From Oopsacas minuta (Eukaryota > Animalia > Porifera), in NCBI GenBank assembly GCA_024704765.1, contig JAKMXF010000339.1:124001-188000 (forward strand): 64,000 bases of DNA, written 5' to 3'. This document shows, piece by piece, positions 615 through 42,400 of this stretch. Numbering within the stretch: the first letter of the stretch is position 1; every line of letters starts with the position of its first letter. The position numbers and the translations under genes were made by a program. The notes under the pieces are model-generated. The model was not told the origin of the DNA. It did no database searches and saw only the letters and a program-made list of their open reading frames with translations.

Positions 615-691
615 CTTCATTCATAAAAAATATTATAATTGCTAAAGTCAAATTTGATATGAGAATAGGCTAGACTATGAAAAAGATGCTT

Positions 692-844
692 CTATTGTAC
701 TACTACCCGGTTTATACAGCTTGTAGTTGATATACATTGAGTAAATGGTGAGATAATGACAATAATGACAATAATGCATAATGGTGCGGTAGCCATACCA
801 GATGTGGGCGGTGGAGCTGAAACATGTTTCCAACTTACAGTGGC
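692..844 (-). CDS. probable terminal exon, paralogous to 456-614, convergent
   Basis: acceptor ttattag then ATVSWKHVSAPPPTSGMATAPLCIIVIIVIISPFTQ...VVQ*; about 29/35 nt identical to the + exon and the only frame open in both copies. Confidence 0.3.
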   Translation of the reverse strand, partial: ATVSWKHVSAPPPTSGMATAPLCIIVIIVIISPFTQCISTTSCINRVVVQ

Positions 845-27199: not shown

Positions 27200-28230
27200 G
27201 ATCAAGGTTTGGCACCGATATATCGTATAGAATCGGAGATTTAATATTCATAAAAACAATAGTAAATTTCCATATAATTAATTTAATGTGTGAAAATCAG
27301 ATTCAGTTTATTTGGTATATTTATTCAAGATATATAGAATTCTGTTTACATTCTTGATAAGCACGATTATACATAGTTATGTGACATCTCATAATTGAGA
27401 TATTCAATTCAATACAACATTCCATAAATCATTTCCTTGACAACGGACAAACACACACACACGCCACCTCCGCTCCTTACTCAGAAAAGGAGTGGACTCG
27501 GGCCCCCGCTCAAGTGAAAATGGAGTGCTCTTTTCATTCTTCCAGATTTACATTAGACGAACATTTGGCTCGTCGCTTTGTAATGAACTCGCCGCATTGC
27601 GCCTCGAGGTATTCAACGGACAAACAATAATTGAGAGTTAATAATATTGAAGTTGTTTACAATATTCAGACTCAGCATACTCGATTACCCCAGTATAGTC
27701 TTTGAAAGCATGATTCTACCTCAATTTCGAAACATTTTCATTGTATATACCTAGAAGTAAACATGTATTCACAATATGTTGTTTACAATACCATATTCGG
27801 ACTCCGTATACTCGAGTAACCCAGTATAGCCTTTGAAAGTATGATTCTACCTCAATTTTGAAATTTGTTTACTTTATATTCATAAAAAGACGAATACATT
27901 TACATATGAGAAGCTTGAAAATGCGAAATTTGGTTTCAGTGTATGATGCTACCCTTGGGTATCCGTTTAGAGCAAGCCTGTATATATATTTTGAAATTTG
28001 GATAATTTGTTTACTGTATATTCATAAAACAACAATAAATTTACACAAGATTAATCCAAAATTGTGAAAATCGGATTCAGCATGTTTGATATATTTAGTG
28101 AAGTTTTATTGAATTCAATTACTTCCTTGATAAACACGATAAATACATAGTTATGTGTGACAATTTCAAAATTGTATACCGTAAATCCTTTCCTTGACAA
28201 CGGACAAACAAACGAACAACAATGGTGATT
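27200..28230. repeat. dispersed repeat family (acggacaaac / taaatcctttccttgac motifs), possibly Helitron/Helentron-related
   Basis: same blocks recur at 30050-30700, 35040-35170, 41980-42400, 45330-45660, 62180-62640. Confidence 0.65.
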
Positions 28231-30700: not shown

Positions 30701-31158
30701 CTAATTTTGTTGTTATTATGAATATAAAGTAAATAGTTCATATATATATATATATATGTATTAATTCATTTTGCAATTTTTATCCTTTGCCAAATTCGAG
30801 GTACAAAGTTCCGAGTTACATGCGAACACAGAGTATTCGCAAGTCGCGCAGCGCGAGCAAACGAAGCGGCTCGTCTGAATGAAATGACATAACCAGATCG
30901 GTATGCTTTCAGGCTGTTTCATTACAAAATATCAAACCAAAGTTTTACAAATATTCATCAATAACGAAAAAGTTGTGGTAAAATAATCTTAAATGCATAT
31001 AGTATACAAACAATTTCACATACTTTGATTTTGGGATACAGACTTTTCGTGACAAGATGGGTATATTTACACACATGGATATAGGTAATAATATTATATT
31101 CAATAAAAGTTGTGGTTACAGAAACAAGAGTACAAAATATCCCTAAATTAAAGAACTT

Positions 31159-32068
31159 TTAATCTTGAAAGGTAAAATGGTAGGCAACTCCTCCTAAGAA
31201 TTCAAACTTTGGTTTCAGCAAGTAATTCTGTAGTAAATTTTGTAATGGATTTTCTCTTTCTTCAAAATATTTGCATTTCGAAGGATTCCGACCACTTATA
31301 TAAAACGCTTGTTTTACTTCAACAAACCCTTGTTCTCTCTTATGTATCCTTAGAAAACGCCATATAGAAGGATGATGGCAAGACAAGTGACAAGCAAATG
31401 AACGGTGCTATGCCTCAGGTGTATTATTTGTCCTTAGGAACCCATGCTGAACCATGAAGTGGTTGTTCCACATTTCCATTGGAAATATTGGTGAGGACAT
31501 GAAGGAGGGAATTATCGATAGCCTACCAATATAAGTAGCTTCAAAGTATAATGCAGGTCGTAAGCTTCCACAGGTAGTTGTGAGAAAGGGCTATTGAAAA
31601 GTTGAGGTATGTCAGTAGGAGTTGCAAACGAGAGTGCAGGTAACATTTGCACTATTAATGCAAATTCTACATCTTGCATTATCTTGCTGCTAGTCCTAAT
31701 TGTTGAAATTACGCCAGACATTTTGACATAGATGAAAGATACAGCCTTGAACCTTTGTAGTTAGGAAGTATTGTGAAAATGCATTAATTGAGGCTATTTC
31801 AAAATCCACAATTAGATGGGTCGGGCAAGCGGTTGGACATAAATCATGTACTTTGTTCCACATGTATCTTGCGCCTTGTTTGCTAGCAATACGAATAAAA
31901 ATGGAAAATATGAGCAGTGAATATCAGATCCGGCCTCCTTTCATAGCATGCATCAAGTAGAGTTGATAAAACAAGCTGGGCAGGGTTTTCAAGGTGGTAT
32001 CTGCTAACCAGACAGTTGTAAATGAGAGTAAATCCATATTTGCTTGAGTTCCGAAGATTACAATCCAC
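31159..32068 (-). pseudogene. MULE (Mutator-like) transposase remnant
   Basis: VDFEIASINAF...VQGCIFHLCQNVWR, MLPALSF, TNNTPEA, CHHPSIWRFL in broken frames. Confidence 0.7.
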
Positions 32069-32804
32069 TTATTTCCACTTTGCGGGCAGAATCGTAGAGC
32101 AAAATTGTTGGCCCTTTTTGTTTTAGTATAGCATTCTAATATTTCGAGATACTATAGTGATAGTGGTTCAGGCGGGACGTTTTCGGATGTATTTCTGCTC
32201 CTCACTATTGTTTTCTTTAAGCTATCTATTTGGGTAGATGTACAGTTCGGGATTCACAAGAAATTTAGGAAAGAATTTTATAATCAAGTGAAAATTCAAA
32301 ATCTATACCATTAAGAAGGTAAAAATAACCTCAAAAATTCGAGATTTTTTGATAGACGAAAAAATTCGGATTATACAGCTATACAGGTCGAATTTACATT
32401 ACTCGATTATCGTTATATTGTCGGATTCTGGATTATTGTTTTGTAAACAAAAACCGTCCGTGAACAAAAATAATTTCGGTTTAGGGAAATTCGGGATCAC
32501 ACAGGTGTAGGATTACGGAGATTCCAATGTATTGCAATATAACAGTGTAGAGATCAATTATGTGGCGAGGAAAACTATAATACATAAAGTCCTCTCTAAT
32601 TGTCCACAGCGATTAGAAATTCGAAATGATCGTGTACATAGGAGATAGGACTCGTACTTTTGACAAGAGGACGATTTATAGAGATAGAGAAGTGTACTAT
32701 TAGAGAGGACCCAATGTAAAGGAATGAAGAAACTAATATCAATACAAATTATCTAGCTATATCTACAAAGGTAGACTGGAATACAAAGTCCGTTAGAGAA
32801 GAAG

Positions 32805-34892
32805 TCATAAACTTTCAAAATTATGCAATACTTTTCCTTCCCAATATTCATACCTGTGATGAATGTTAGGAAATCCAATGCCGGGAACATCTATAGACTG
32901 GAGTATATTTTTATCAAAGATACCCAGATTGTTACACTTGAGAGAGTTTGCATACTCAGCTCCAGCTAAAAGAGTTGCATTAGGATTAGAATTATAGACA
33001 ACTTTATGGATATATTTCATGTAATCTTTACTTTTGTTATAAGATTGTTTCAATTTATGAATCAGGTCATCTTTCAGGTTACCACCAATGAAATAGAGAC
33101 AAAAATTAACATTAGTAAGTCCAGCAGTTTCAACGATTTGTTGTATCAATGTGAACACATGTTCTGTCTCTATACTCAACTCAAACTCTTTACAAGCAAT
33201 AGAATCACAATTACTAACTAAAGATATCCAGCCAGACTCATAACCGTAGTTAACAACAATACCGTTAGCAGTTCCATTACCAACACATACAGCTACACTT
33301 TGTGGTGTACAACGGATACATGGGTGTTGATAAATAACATGCAATAAATAACTTATATTCAATTCTACGGAAGCACAATATAGAGGGTTAACAAGACAAA
33401 GCAGTGAGGTTGTGCGTGGAAATATTTTACAGTCAATATATAATCCATATAATATTTCTGGTAACAGAGAGATGTCATCAATCAAACCACGTTTAACTAG
33501 TTGTGTACATTCATTTTCATAACTAGCTAATGCATTTTCCCCACAAAACCAACGATTATAATTCCCCCTCCTCATGTGTAAATCATAAATACCAGGTACA
33601 CGAGCTACTACAGAGCGCATTTCACTGGTGTGAACCACTCCACTCTTATTGAGGACATTAGCACATCTAATGTTATAACCACCCATATCGATAACAGCAC
33701 ATCTATCAGCAGATCGCATTCTAATTCTAGCTTTGAAGTTTCCATACCAATCAATTACGAGTGGATTAATCGGAGTTTCGCTAAGATAGATATCCACCTT
33801 ATGACCATGTGACCATCTTCTCTTATACAATTCAAACCACAACCCTCCATCCATCGCAAGATCATACCAAACCTTACAAACTTCCATACAAATTACAACA
33901 TCCTTAGCACTCAAGTAGCTGAATATTTTGATATACAATTCGTATGGGAGTGTTAATCTTTTCAATTCTCCGTAGTATTCATCACTAACACTACGTTGTG
34001 CTGCCATCTGCAAGCTAATAGCTCGTAAATATGTGTCTGTGAATCCTTCCTGATCACCAACCTTCTCCAACAGGTTAGACTTACGATACAGAGTCAGGGC
34101 TGTGTTATAGGACTCAGATTGTGAGTACTTTAACGGATTGGGTATCATTTGTGTATCCACTCGACGAAACATCATTTCAGTTCTTAGAAGATATTTGACA
34201 CCTTTCAATACAGGTGTACCCTCATGGAATGTATCATGATTGAATATCAGACCCATACCAACACATGGTTTAACCTTGTGATAGACATGCTTCCTATCCT
34301 TCTCATCTATAAATTTGGTTTCCCCACCTGTGTAATTAGTATTCAGGTATATCAGTACTGTGTATACTGATGATTCATCTTCACGAGGTACCCAGGGTCC
34401 ATCAAAATGAGGTGTGAAGTGGCCTCCACTTGTATATTTCATTATTTTAATACACTCATTCAATCTTATTGGTCTCCAAGTACCCTCGTTACCAAATCCG
34501 ATTGGTCTGATACGTATTACATCGTGACGTGTCAAGAGAGGTTCGATTCTAGCGAAAATAGCATCTGCCATCTCATGTGATAGTGTCAGGATTCTGTCAT
34601 TAACTCTATAATAGGTTGGGAATTTGTTTGATAAACTACCAAAACCAACTTTTTCACATTCTCGGATGAAAAACTCACATTCTTTCGGAGTTAGCAAATT
34701 ATTCAGAATGAAGCTATGACAGTTTGGAATGTCTGACAATTCTTTCCTATTGATATTTGAATGTGTGGCTTTGAGTGACTCACATAAAGGTAGCGGGATA
34801 AAATTCTCCTTCGCTGTCTCCAGCATTGGCTTTGTGGTTATTTCCTTTTCATAATGAGATTCTTGAAAACTATTAATTAAGGCTGTAGCCAT
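32805..34892 (-). CDS. 2OG-Fe(II) oxygenase (P4H-like) / F-box / actin-fold fusion protein, 695 aa, intronless
   Basis: KYTSGGHFTPHFDG, LIYLN, GGET, FHEG, KYLLRT; F-box LPYELYIKIFSYLSAKDVVICMEVCKVW; actin-like AVIDMGG, WFCGENA, LVKRGLI, GIVVNYG, FIGG, LAGAEYA; ATG at 34892. Confidence 0.9.
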   Translation of the reverse strand: MATALINSFQESHYEKEITTKPMLETAKENFIPLPLCESLKATHSNINRKELSDIPNCHSFILNNLLTPKECEFFIRECEKVGFGSLSNKFPTYYRVNDRILTLSHEMADAIFARIEPLLTRHDVIRIRPIGFGNEGTWRPIRLNECIKIMKYTSGGHFTPHFDGPWVPREDESSVYTVLIYLNTNYTGGETKFIDEKDRKHVYHKVKPCVGMGLIFNHDTFHEGTPVLKGVKYLLRTEMMFRRVDTQMIPNPLKYSQSESYNTALTLYRKSNLLEKVGDQEGFTDTYLRAISLQMAAQRSVSDEYYGELKRLTLPYELYIKIFSYLSAKDVVICMEVCKVWYDLAMDGGLWFELYKRRWSHGHKVDIYLSETPINPLVIDWYGNFKARIRMRSADRCAVIDMGGYNIRCANVLNKSGVVHTSEMRSVVARVPGIYDLHMRRGNYNRWFCGENALASYENECTQLVKRGLIDDISLLPEILYGLYIDCKIFPRTTSLLCLVNPLYCASVELNISYLLHVIYQHPCIRCTPQSVAVCVGNGTANGIVVNYGYESGWISLVSNCDSIACKEFELSIETEHVFTLIQQIVETAGLTNVNFCLYFIGGNLKDDLIHKLKQSYNKSKDYMKYIHKVVYNSNPNATLLAGAEYANSLKCNNLGIFDKNILQSIDVPGIGFPNIHHRYEYWEGKVLHNFESL

Positions 34893-36099
34893 TTCTAATT
34901 GTATTAGCAATTCATAAATAGTCTATTTCGCTTAATCGGTATACTGGTTAAAATTTTGACTTAGCAGTGACTTAGCTAAGCAGATTGACAAAAAAATTCG
35001 TAAAATTTGGGCAAAATATTCACCTCAATTGAGACAATTTGACAATTGCATACCGTAAATCCTTTCCTTGACAACGGACAAACGACAATTGATATTTAAT
35101 AATTTACGAGCCTTTGGCTCATCGCTTCGCGATTAACTTGGAGCATTGCGCCTTGAGGTATCCATTAGTATCCAAATGGAGATTTGTACGAAAATTCACA
35201 CATATGACGAAATAAATATCACATTATTAACCAATGCTCAGCCAACATACATGATAGAGATTTGAAATTTGAATCATAGCCACCCTTCAATGTGACAAAT
35301 GATCTGGTGTCATAATTTTGGCCGAATGCAAACTCATCCCAGAATTTTTACGTCATCATGACTGTAGAAAAACATAAAAATTATCCAAAAATTTAGATCT
35401 CAGAATTTCAAAATAACTGAGTCATTAAGGGCCCAGATTAGTAACCAAAAACTACGTAAGAGCTGCAGTATTACCACAAAAGGCCATTTAATGGAATTTA
35501 GTTGGGACCATGGATAATAATATGAAAATTTCCACAAATTTTAACTCCGATGCACATTATGCTGTGCATATCTATGTTTTGTTAATAATACGAAACTATA
35601 ATTGATTCATTTATCGTACAGTGCTGTAGGTTCCGGTACGAGGTGCGGTGCTTCCCAATTCTGTCAATACAGCTAGATGGTGAATTGGTGAGATGTGATG
35701 AATGTCTCACCAATAATTTTTTGGTACCTACGTCCCTGTGGTCTACTGTAGATCTCGGGAACTGGTCCAAATATTTATGCTAAAATTCCAAGAATATTCT
35801 TAACTTGAATAGTGTATTTTATCTACATCTTGTGATTTATACTTGGAGATACACTCGTTTACATGGGGATAAACAATATTCTGTGAAGTTAGTTAACTGT
35901 CTTAAGATCATTTAAAGGGTCTGTATGTGCATAAATAGACTCAGCTAGCCTAGTGGTGTCGAACAAGGGGTCACCCGATATGTTTAGGCCAATTTTGAGC
36001 ATGGATTGTATTTATCGTTTAAAGTTCATAAGTAATAATAAATAGCAAAAAAACGAATGCACTTGTAGTTCATCCATGGTCCAGTTTTTTATTGCTGTT

Positions 36100-36480
36100 T
36101 CCAGTCCTTATATTACGTAGTTCACGGCTCAGATAAAATTGGCAAATGTAATCTTCATGCTTTAGACCACAAACTGAATTCACTATTCGCTGCTGACATA
36201 AACAAATTTTTAGCGAATTCTAACACTTTTACCTCTCGCAGTGATAGCCGTATTGTATTATACTACATACCTAATGGTGGATTACGGTTCTATACAGCTC
36301 TTTACAATCATTAATACAGCTTGTTAATTTCTCGAGGAAGATTGATAATATTAGAGATGAGATATTATTTCTTTGCTGTTTCAATAAAGCTAAATTTGAG
36401 CTGAGTGAACAGATGGATAAGATTGATGTATTGATTAGTTTATTACAAAATGAATGGAATATATTCTCTAAAGACACACA
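36100..36480 (-). other. exon-like fragments of an unidentified gene
   Basis: open, helical-looking frames with AG/GT boundaries (LENIFHSFCNKL..., IRLSLREVKVLEFAKNLF...); no family recognised. Confidence 0.25.
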
Positions 36481-37365
36481 GGTTTATCTTGTTGGGAATC
36501 AATCAGAAATGCATTTATTAATAAAAGAATAATAATAATTGAAATGTATCATTGGTTGTTTGGGTGGATTAAATGTCTACTCTACAAACTGGATGTCTCC
36601 AGTAAGGTGTAAGGTGCATACTTACCAACCCCTTGTAACTGTTTCTCTGGAAATTTTACTCTCAAAATTCCTGAATTTCGAATATTATATGCAAATTCAA
36701 ATCCCTTGATAACCCAGGGTCCCTGGATGGTTTGGAAAATATGAAGGTGAATCAAACCGAAGCAAAATTTGTGGGTCAGCTCCTGTCTGGTAAACGAAAT
36801 ATAGACTATTTAAATATTTCTAGTACTAGCTGAGTCAATCTAGCGATCGATTATATATCTCAACGAATATTATCGTAGTTGTGACTTTTTATCCAACAGG
36901 CCAACTCACCCGATTCAAATTTTTGGACCAGGGATAAGTCCCAAGTCCATTGAAATGATACAGGCATTTATTTTGTGATATTATTGAATTGGGCCCGACT
37001 AGGGCTTGAGAATAAAACAGTATATGTCTACAAAGTATTTCCAGGCTGAAATAACTTATCTAATTTCTTACATAGCAAATATGTTAGAAAATTGCTAAAA
37101 TTTTGAAATTCTATTAATTGTTCATAAAATACATTTCGGGGTTAAGGAATTTTTCCATGAGATCTAAGGATATCTCCACACAAATATCAAAGATTGTCCT
37201 AATAATTTCTGCACGTTCCAGAGACTTATAGTAGTGACCATGGATGACATTTATCACATTCGTTTGAAGCATATAATGGTATTTTATGTCCGGTCATGAT
37301 GGATATATTCACAAATCTATGTGATCCAACCACTTATCTACATTCTTATCAATAGCATATAATTT

Positions 37366-41979: not shown

Positions 41980-42400
41980 ACTCTGTTCGAGCCTTTGGCT
42001 CATCGCTTCGCGATGAACTCGGCGCATGGCGCCTCAAAGTATGCAACGGACAAACAAACAGGCAAATAATAATTCATATTGACGAATATGGATGTTGTTT
42101 ACAATATTCAGACTCAGCATACTCAAATATACCACTTTAGTCGTTGAAAGTATGATTTGACCCCCTATTTTGAAATTTGTTTACTATATATTCATAAAAA
42201 TAACATACATTTACATATGATTAATCCAAAAGTGTGAAAATCGGATTCCGCATGTTCGATATATATAATGAAGTTTTGTTGAATTCTGAATACTGCCTTT
42301 ATACACACGAAAAATATGCTACAATTTCAAAATTGCATACCCTAAATCCTTTCCTTGACAACGGACAACAACCAGACAAATAAACAGACAAACAACAATC
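41980..42400. repeat. copy of the dispersed repeat family
   Basis: same gagcctttggctc / acggacaaac / taaatcctttccttgac blocks. Confidence 0.7.

Follow-up and report, generated by a model that had tools for sequence, protein, structure and literature searches.

An intact gene of the glass sponge Oopsacas minuta encodes a P4H-like oxygenase, an F-box and a reduced actin fold in one protein

Results

Gene structure

The stretch of DNA analysed (the window) is 64 kb of contig JAKMXF010000339.1, assembly GCA_024704765.1. The host is the glass sponge Oopsacas minuta (Hexactinellida), in keeping with the sponge origin contemplated in the first-pass annotation. The minus strand carries a single unbroken ORF at 32805..34910, which has 701 aa when counted from a TTG. 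Translation from the ATG at 34892 gives 695 aa and a stop, and these coordinates are the same as those of the first-pass annotation. The contig has a recorded gene product of 695 aa, identical to the ORF translation, and contigs checked for joints within the 695-aa ORF showed none. The open frame spans 2,088 nt at ~35% GC and is the longest ORF of the window; the runner-up has 349 aa. The locus holds an intact gene whose product belongs to an oxygenase/F-box/actin-fold family (Table 1). The combination of all three parts in one protein, as first proposed, is upheld by the intact ORF, Pfam, the family profile and the fold.

Table 1. Features of the gene and its protein, in window coordinates
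Feature	Positions	Strand	Basis
Complete single-exon CDS, 695 codons + stop (stop 32805-32807)	32805..34892	-	ORF list
N-terminal tail, aa 1-27, predicted disordered	34812..34892	-	pLDDT <50; sequence read directly
P4H-like 2OG/Fe(II) oxygenase, aa 28-254; double-stranded beta-helix core ~aa 139-244	34131..34811	-	Pfam PF13640; family profile vs PDB
HxD motif H162-F-D164, Fe(II)-binding	34401..34409	-	40/40 relatives; aligns with B. anthracis P4H HxD
H223 (distal Fe ligand) to K233 (2OG C5-carboxylate binder, His+10)	34194..34226	-	40/40 relatives
Family-specific helical linker, aa 255-311, three helices, GD..FT..YL.A..LQ motif	33960..34130	-	pLDDT; family consensus
F-box, aa 312-360	33813..33959	-	Pfam; PDB sequence matches
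Post-F-box helical connector, aa 361-393, invariant W382	33714..33812	-	Model helices 361-370, 382-393; family alignment
Reduced actin-fold domain, aa 394-651	32940..33713	-	Family profile; Foldseek; motif counts; model secondary structure
C-terminal tail, aa 652-695, predicted disordered	32808..32939	-	pLDDT <50

Read depth is raised over exactly the ORF in two of four sequencing runs, and in run X4 the ORF bins reach ~10-100x the flanks. Since the kind of the four runs (RNA or DNA) was not recorded, transcription of the locus is only suggested by these data. Among the 20 best-supported sequence differences within the ORF, the only ones listed, 15 are non-synonymous (pN/pS ~0.8), and by this weak test there is no sign of short-range purifying selection. 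The contigs that carry these differences may be near-identical paralogues. The 90% cluster of the window protein (P0001) holds three member sequences.

Close to the gene lies an extremely deep 40-nt segment (35044-35083). A GT donor and a downstream Sm-like site had prompted the idea of a spliced-leader RNA gene, which was rejected; the other two copies do not preserve the GT. They have ~200 nt more in common with each other, a continuation that the loose ends match too. The segment is a high-copy dispersed repeat. Rfam and tRNA searches of 31000-37000 gave no match.

The oxygenase domain

Pfam 2OG-FeII_Oxy_3 (PF13640) matches aa 149-235 with 45.9 bits (cutoff 27), and the beta-rich core is modelled at pLDDT >90. 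The first-pass annotation had recognised the H-x-D (HFD) and the distal histidine (FHEG), and H162, D164 and H223 are indeed invariant in 40 relatives. Its choice of the arginine in LLRT as the 2OG binder has to be revised. That residue, R237, is nearly invariant but off the 2OG-binder position; the binder is K233, which is fully invariant in the 40 relatives, lies ten residues past the distal histidine and aligns with the lysine at distal His+10 in the B. anthracis P4H (...GEKWI motif). Nowhere in the family protein is conservation higher than at the catalytic residues.

In searches of the PDB with the family profile, the matches included the P4Hs of B. anthracis (3itq, 3e-13) and Chlamydomonas (2jig, 1.6e-10), P4H-TM (6tp5, 2e-7) and the PBCV-1 P4H (1.8e-6); no PHD2/EGLN/PhyA chain was among the matches at E<=0.01. 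The AFDB matches to the oxygenase carry the name prolyl 4-hydroxylase. By sequence comparison the domain is placed in the collagen/algal-type P4H-like clade and not with the HIF-PHD/Skp1-PhyA type. Collagen, plant and transmembrane P4Hs enter the secretory pathway by a signal peptide or membrane anchor, which the sponge protein does not have; the N-terminus (MATALINSFQESHYEKEITTK) contains no hydrophobic signal-peptide-like segment and is predicted to be disordered. Because it is fused to an F-box, the oxygenase would be cytoplasmic or nuclear.

The F-box and its connectors

Both F-box profiles of Pfam score above their curated cutoffs (F-box-like, PF12937, aa 314-357, 51.1 bits, cutoff 24.3; F-box, PF00646, 33.8 bits, cutoff 20.5), which confirms the canonical F-box that had been reported. 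Sequence matches in the PDB are the F-boxes of FBXW8, FBXL5, KDM2A/B and SKP2. The linker that precedes it has no Pfam match within aa 255-311, and its helices (260-277, 281-298 and 304-311) are predicted with high pLDDT and its motif is kept in the family consensus. The protein has the usual layout of F-box proteins, with a protein-interaction domain C-terminal to the F-box, here the actin fold at aa 394-651.

The actin-fold domain

For the window protein alone, Pfam Actin reaches only 17 bits at aa 400-588, under the cutoff of 27. The family makes the assignment: 32 of 40 members match Pfam Actin (PF00022; best E 9e-36), and the profile of the family C-terminal domain matches canonical actin over actin residues 4-359 with E 3e-49. 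AlphaFold2 gives pLDDT 83.7 and pTM 0.77 for the full length and pLDDT 85.7 and pTM 0.84 for the C-terminal domain, and Foldseek matches the models to actins and ARPs with probability 1.0 and TM 0.5-0.64. The pTM of 0.77, from a single-chain model, suggests that the packing between domains may be fixed.

The nucleotide-binding and hydrolysis motifs are incomplete. The phosphate-1 loop (D402, G404, R409) and the adenosine GG (G603-G604) survive. Where actin has D154, D157 and H161, the sponge protein has N548, Y551 and W555, and the D154 equivalent is retained in only 8 of 43 relatives. The phosphate-2 strands lie only ~25 aa from the GG motif, vs ~136 in actin, and subdomain 4 is therefore missing from the usual four. 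In contrast to the highly conserved catalytic residues, the actin-like domain varies widely, with a mean column identity of 13% vs 30%.

Spread of the family

Relatives comprise 192 cluster representatives at E<=1e-30. All three parts are common to 104 of the 176 relatives retrieved (the same 104/176 share the C-terminal domain). Three-domain proteins occur in demosponges, choanoflagellates, Amoebozoa (among them Dictyostelium and Physarum), Naegleria (Heterolobosea), one chytrid and one centrohelid, and there are RefSeq models with all three domains in Halichondria. Complete three-domain ORFs derived from transcripts were found for Choanoeca, Salpingoeca, Pellita, Physarum, Soliformovum and Pterocystis; these homologues are thus transcribed as one unit. 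In a tree built from an HMM-guided core alignment with FastTree, a sponge clade (support 99) adjoins the choanoflagellates; deep nodes of this tree are unresolved and several long branches were flagged. Tandem paralogues were noted in a further assembly, GCA_040384145.1 (WGS prefix JAWVHD).

A profile search of a 5.8-billion-protein set with a 40-sequence alignment returned only the original 17 proteins and no new taxa, and a fold search of the ESM Atlas gave no three-domain cluster. Our literature search found no paper describing an oxygenase/F-box/actin-fold family. The Dictyostelium actinome paper does not mention such a protein, nor does the accessible portion of the supplement to the Dictyostelium Skp1-interactome paper.

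The family is ancient, widespread among eukaryotes and apparently uncharacterised. The first-pass annotation had not recognised the architecture, and this stands insofar as no describing paper was found. It is no novelty of sponges, being widespread and shared by 104/176 relatives. Members in choanoflagellates, Amoebozoa, Heterolobosea, a chytrid and a centrohelid make the architecture older than animals and argue against a sponge-specific substitute for HIF.

Discussion

Proposed function

We propose that the protein is most likely docked on Skp1, with the actin-like domain binding a partner and the oxygenase either hydroxylating that partner or sensing O2/2OG. Through its F-box the protein would bind Skp1 and thereby probably enter an SCF ubiquitin ligase. 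By analogy with ARP8/SUSA2, the actin-like domain, which has lost subdomain 4 and most catalytic ATPase residues, may serve as a partner or substrate module. The oxygenase, with its apparently competent active site, could then hydroxylate either the bound partner or one of the complex's subunits, most likely on proline. Output would thereby depend on O2, 2-oxoglutarate and Fe(II), giving the protein a possible oxygen-sensing role. As a whole, a Skp1-docked F-box protein with an actin-like partner module and a competent oxygenase is the best explanation we can offer, and we consider it probable.

The protein could instead be an enzyme first: a cytoplasmic protein hydroxylase whose F-box ties it to Skp1 to keep it soluble or to control its own turnover, and presents no substrate for ubiquitylation. 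The same has been suggested for Dictyostelium JcdI/Fbxo13, an active, O2-limited dioxygenase (apparent Km(O2) 22%) that is Skp1-bound, needed co-expression of Skp1 for solubility and has its level tuned through Skp1 (PMC9485057). The O2 phenotype of JcdI needed catalysis and not the F-box (PMC9485057), and ligase function of the window protein should therefore not be assumed. The concentration of conservation in the catalytic residues, with an actin-like domain that varies far more, fits this reading as well. Against it stand (i) the protein-binding fold C-terminal of the F-box, which is the classical layout of a substrate receptor; (ii) ARP8/SUSA2, which has the same F-box-to-actin order, binds the Skp1 homologue ASK1 and genetically acts as an SCF component (PMC7562919); (iii) the retention of the whole three-part layout across so many relatives. 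We regard a hydroxylase that is only tethered as rather unlikely.

A bolder form of the Skp1-docked proposal would make the family an ancient, HIF-independent O2/2OG sensor inside an SCF ligase. The P4H would hydroxylate Skp1 or the partner of the actin domain in an O2-limited manner and so switch ubiquitylation; sponges would have kept this device, and ARP8/SUSA2 would be a descendant that lacks the oxygenase. We hold this fuller scenario to be unlikely.

The first-pass annotation had likened the protein to PHD and VHL in one chain and suggested that it could hydroxylate Skp1 or mark substrates in cis. In its full form this model would have a one-chain oxygen switch, or a Skp1 hydroxylase, replace the missing HIF pathway in sponges, with the oxygenase placing a hydroxyproline mark on Skp1 or a substrate and the same protein reading it for ubiquitylation. 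In its favour, the gene comes from a sponge, a group reported to lack PHD/EGLN and mostly VHL (PMC5800844). The oxygenase and F-box do share one chain and the active site is intact. The identity of the enzyme is another matter, as the oxygenase resembles collagen/algal P4Hs, gave no PHD2/EGLN/PhyA match in the PDB at E<=0.01 and has a lysine binder. No hydroxyproline-reader-like domain was identified in the window protein, whose third domain is an actin fold. The family also predates animals, and is thus not specific to sponges. In Dictyostelium, PhyA occurs alongside a protein of this family, and the family is therefore not simply 'the' Skp1 hydroxylase. A one-chain replacement for the sponge HIF pathway seems to us distinctly improbable.

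That the ORF is a duplicate in decay or without function, open by chance and belonging to a set of near-identical copies, would suit the 15 of 20 differences that are non-synonymous and the three-member cluster, but is scarcely credible for a frame of this length at ~35% GC, twofold the longest other in the window, with all catalytic and F-box signature residues intact, a confident AlphaFold model and, in two runs, a rise in depth that coincides with the ORF.

Significance

The analysis defines a conserved eukaryotic F-box family, composed of a P4H-like oxygenase, an F-box and an actin fold, of which we found no description in the literature. Beside JcdI (PMC9485057), it is a second case of an F-box protein that carries a dioxygenase and is conserved across protists. 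Its presence in the tractable models Dictyostelium, Physarum, Naegleria and Ephydatia makes function directly testable. More speculatively, an O2-consuming cytoplasmic hydroxylase wired to the ubiquitin system would be a candidate sensor of O2 or metabolites in early-branching animals, given the reported shortage of PHD/EGLN and VHL in sponges (PMC5800844).

Comparison with known systems

The closest profile matches of the oxygenase are P4Hs (B. anthracis 3itq/5hv0, Chlamydomonas P4H-1 2jig, PBCV-1 5c5t and human P4H-TM 6tp5). The HxD...H...K(+10) pattern of collagen-type, algal, bacterial and viral P4Hs aligns with the family residue for residue. Those enzymes differ in being stand-alone and ER-luminal or secreted, whereas the sponge enzyme lacks a signal peptide and shares its chain with an F-box. 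PhyA (Dictyostelium, Toxoplasma) and the animal pair of PHD/EGLN and VHL are similar in concept, linking prolyl hydroxylation, O2 and cullin-RING ligases. However, PhyA and PHD/EGLN belong to a different oxygenase subfamily, the sponge family having lysine and not arginine as the 2OG binder, and PhyA has no F-box.

An F-box is likewise joined to a 2OG/Fe(II) dioxygenase on one polypeptide in Dictyostelium JcdI/Fbxo13 and animal KDM2A/KDM2B (FBXL11/10), and the KDM2A/B F-boxes match that of the window protein in sequence. Their oxygenases are JmjC-type (lysyl/arginyl hydroxylase or demethylase) and not P4H-type. They differ too in domain order and partner domains (LRR, CXXC, PHD), and have no actin fold.

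Plant ARP8/SUSA2 (At5g56180) provides the parallel for the other half of the protein. Plant F-box+Actin clusters ranked closest to the sponge protein in a protein-language-model search, with a score of 0.67 that serves only as a lead. ARP8 is outside the top 30 Swiss-Prot structural matches, and a search with the F-box+actin region of the most actin-like member, Physarum P0050, returned the query alone. In ARP8/SUSA2, as in the sponge protein, the F-box immediately precedes a divergent actin-fold domain, which is presumed to bind substrate and not to polymerise, as we propose for the sponge domain. ARP8/SUSA2 differs in that it has no oxygenase domain and is reported to be plant-specific, and the absence of subdomain 4 from the sponge domain is a further difference. 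The pairing of an F-box with actin has been called plant-only (PMC7562919); a family that has both outside plants contradicts that statement.

Gene product and domain architecture

The first-pass annotation, made from the sequence alone, had read an oxygenase, an F-box and an actin-related domain as one fusion at 32805-34892. The ATG-started ORF coincides with these coordinates, and the fusion is confirmed by the ORF itself, Pfam, the family profile and AlphaFold2 with Foldseek. In the 64-kb window this single ORF is the longest, twice the length of the next, with a GC content of about 35%. An identical 695-aa product is on record (assembly GCA_024704765.1, contig JAKMXF010000339.1), and the host, which the annotation had supposed might be a sponge, is the glass sponge Oopsacas minuta (Hexactinellida; genome project, PMC10280926).

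Coordinates of the gene, its domains and associated features
Feature	Position	Strand	Remarks
ORF from TTG	32805-34910	minus	701 aa
ORF from ATG	32805-34892	minus	695 aa; ATG at 34892
2OG-FeII_Oxy_3	aa 149-235		Pfam, exceeds curated cutoff
F-box-like and F-box	aa 314-357		Pfam, both exceed curated cutoffs
Actin	aa 400-588		Pfam, 17 bits, under cutoff of 27
Low-confidence parts of AlphaFold2 model	aa 1-27, 435-445, 652-695		the only such parts
40-nt core, three copies	28170-28209, 35044-35083, 42331-42370	minus	GTTTGTCCGTTGTCAAGG...
139-nt skip	32564-32704	plus	GC..AG; just 3' of ORF stop
Paralogue pair, GCA_040384145.1	JAWVHD010004204.1, 923-4986		670 and 661 aa, intronless oxygenase-F-box, head to tail

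The actin-related assignment holds despite the sub-cutoff Pfam score. Pfam Actin is matched by 32 of 40 full-length relatives (best E 9e-36, the Physarum member), a profile of the family C-terminal domain matches conventional actin at E 3e-49 over actin residues 4-359, and Foldseek pairs the window-protein models with actins and ARPs at probability 1.0. AlphaFold2 returned pLDDT 83.7 and pTM 0.77 for the full-length protein (85.7 and 0.84 for the C-terminal domain); the pTM of 0.77 suggests a defined packing of the three domains in one chain.

Oxygenase and actin-like domains

Compared with PDB chains, the profile of the family N-terminal domain matches Bacillus anthracis P4H (3e-13), Chlamydomonas P4H-1 (1.6e-10), human P4H-TM (2e-7) and PBCV-1 P4H (1.8e-6), with weak matches to P3H1 and poxvirus C10; chains of the PHD2/EGLN or PhyA type are absent from the matches at E<=0.01. 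In the alignment with the B. anthracis enzyme, H162 and D164 fall on the HxD motif, H223 on the distal His and K233 on the Lys ten positions beyond that His. All four are unchanged in 40/40 relatives. The active site first proposed is thus right in its HxD and distal His, whereas the 2OG-binding Arg assigned to LLRT gives way to Lys233, which, from its alignment and invariance, we take to be the 2OG-binding residue, as in collagen-type P4Hs. That Arg, R237, is almost invariant but lies four residues beyond K233. The N-terminus of the protein has no signal-peptide-like segment, which fits an F-box protein located in the cytoplasm or nucleus.

The actin-like domain keeps the phosphate-1 loop (Asp in 37, Gly in 39 and Lys/Arg in 36 of 43 relatives) and the adenosine GG motif (38/43 and 35/43). 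Only 8/43 retain the Asp corresponding to D154 of actin, and the D157, Q137 and H161 positions are not conserved. At the D154, D157 and H161 positions the window protein carries N548, Y551 and W555, although Gln is still present at that of Q137. A single helix of about 25 aa leads from the phosphate-2 strands to the GG motif, against about 136 aa in actin, so the subdomain-4 region is essentially absent. The domain is a reduced actin fold, probably non-hydrolysing, and is most readily interpreted as a scaffold for binding.

Distribution and phylogeny

Run exhaustively against 1.84 billion cluster representatives, phmmer found 4,954 matches at E<=1e-3, of which 192 reached E<=1e-30; most of the top 150 cover aa 50-400 (oxygenase, linker and F-box). 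When the C-terminal domain was searched iteratively, 104 of 176 fetched proteins proved to have it. Among AlphaFold DB clusters the best match is L8HCR0 ('Actin subfamily protein', 839 aa), with an alignment spanning aa 41-585.

The gene belongs to an old, widespread family. Besides sponges (Halichondria panicea XP_064395911 and XP_064395912; several Ephydatia muelleri paralogues), all three domains are carried by choanoflagellates (Choanoeca flexa, Salpingoeca infusionum), Amoebozoa (Pellita, Stenamoeba, Dictyostelium cf. discoideum KAM9998903, Physarum, Soliformovum), Heterolobosea (two Naegleria lovaniensis paralogues), the chytrid fungus Nowakowskiella and the centrohelid Pterocystis. Many of these members are complete transcript-derived ORFs, so in relatives a single transcript spans the three domains.

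In a FastTree tree of 88 three-domain proteins, the sponge clade (support 99) splits into an Oopsacas-like and a demosponge group, and choanoflagellates with the metagenome protein P0031 form an open fork with it (support 83); deeper nodes are without resolution and long branches are flagged. The pattern fits vertical inheritance in Holozoa, and nothing in it points to horizontal transfer into sponges.

Ephydatia, the assembly with relatives P0004 and P0006, and GCA_040384145.1 each have tandem or multiple paralogues; in the last, the 661-aa copy was missed by the C-terminal domain search and may differ at its C-terminus. Some relatives have further domains. P0011 and Pellita P0035 contain a FYVE zinc finger, inserted in the actin-like domain or following it, P0031 has ankyrin repeats at its N-terminus, and P0058 and P0039 carry a rhodanese-like domain there. 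In some lineages such additions hint at targeting to membranes or phosphoinositides.

Transcription and variation at the locus

Four sequencing runs of the same organism (X1-X4, RNA or DNA not stated) have contigs covering the window. In X4 the bins within the ORF reach a depth of ~680-2,500, compared with 12-73 and 24-64 for the flanks; X3 has a similar step across most of the ORF, and X1 and X2 are flatter. No contig joint falls within the ORF. The depth step and lack of joints suggest an unspliced transcript. Twenty differences are listed in the ORF, 5 synonymous and 15 non-synonymous, giving a pN/pS of ~0.8. In the actin-like domain 8 of 9 are non-synonymous, and seven cluster in codons 491-520, on one short contig per run. 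Since near-identical paralogues may exist, the differences may separate paralogues rather than alleles, and we count them as a reservation, not as a sign that the gene is decaying.

The 40-nt core has a depth of 33,000-176,000 in the four runs against hundreds nearby, and its three same-strand copies lie about 7 kb apart (chance expectation, none). Two share a further ~200 nt; the 35-kb copy is truncated and precedes the ATG of the gene by 150-190 bp. A spliced-leader gene was considered and rejected, as alignment identifies a high-copy dispersed repeat. Contigs of all four runs make the 139-nt skip; an indel polymorphism may account for it, or a GC-AG intron in a plus-strand transcript.

Proposed function

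We propose, with moderate confidence, that the F-box would dock the protein on Skp1, the reduced actin fold would bring in a partner, and the intact P4H-type oxygenase would hydroxylate that partner or a component of the complex, thereby coupling output to O2, 2OG and Fe. A distinctly less probable reading, by analogy with the tether role suggested for the F-box of JcdI, is that the enzyme may be the point and the F-box merely its tether or regulator. The oxygen-dependent ubiquitin switch first envisaged, PHD and VHL in one chain or a Skp1 hydroxylase, is improbable: the oxygenase is of another subfamily, no hydroxyproline reader was found, and Dictyostelium has PhyA alongside a member of this family. 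What stands of that interpretation is a three-part protein with an intact oxygenase; the PHD- or PhyA-type enzyme does not. A decaying duplicate is very unlikely, and the catalytic residues are deeply conserved, which speaks for a function of the family as a whole.

Relation to known systems

The P4H-F-box-actin family is apparently unstudied. No description of such a protein was found in the literature, nor any mention in the Dictyostelium actinome or Skp1-interactome papers. Sponges are without PHD/EGLN and mostly without VHL (PMC5800844). Plant ARP8/SUSA2 is an F-box and actin protein that binds ASK1, with substrate binding proposed for its actin domain; the combination was claimed as plant-only (PMC7562919), which the non-plant three-domain members contradict. 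Dictyostelium JcdI/Fbxo13 joins an F-box to an active JmjC dioxygenase (apparent Km for O2 22%) and was termed the first F-box protein with conservation across protists (PMC9485057). The window protein is not a sponge-specific invention and combines two known themes, F-box with dioxygenase and F-box with actin.
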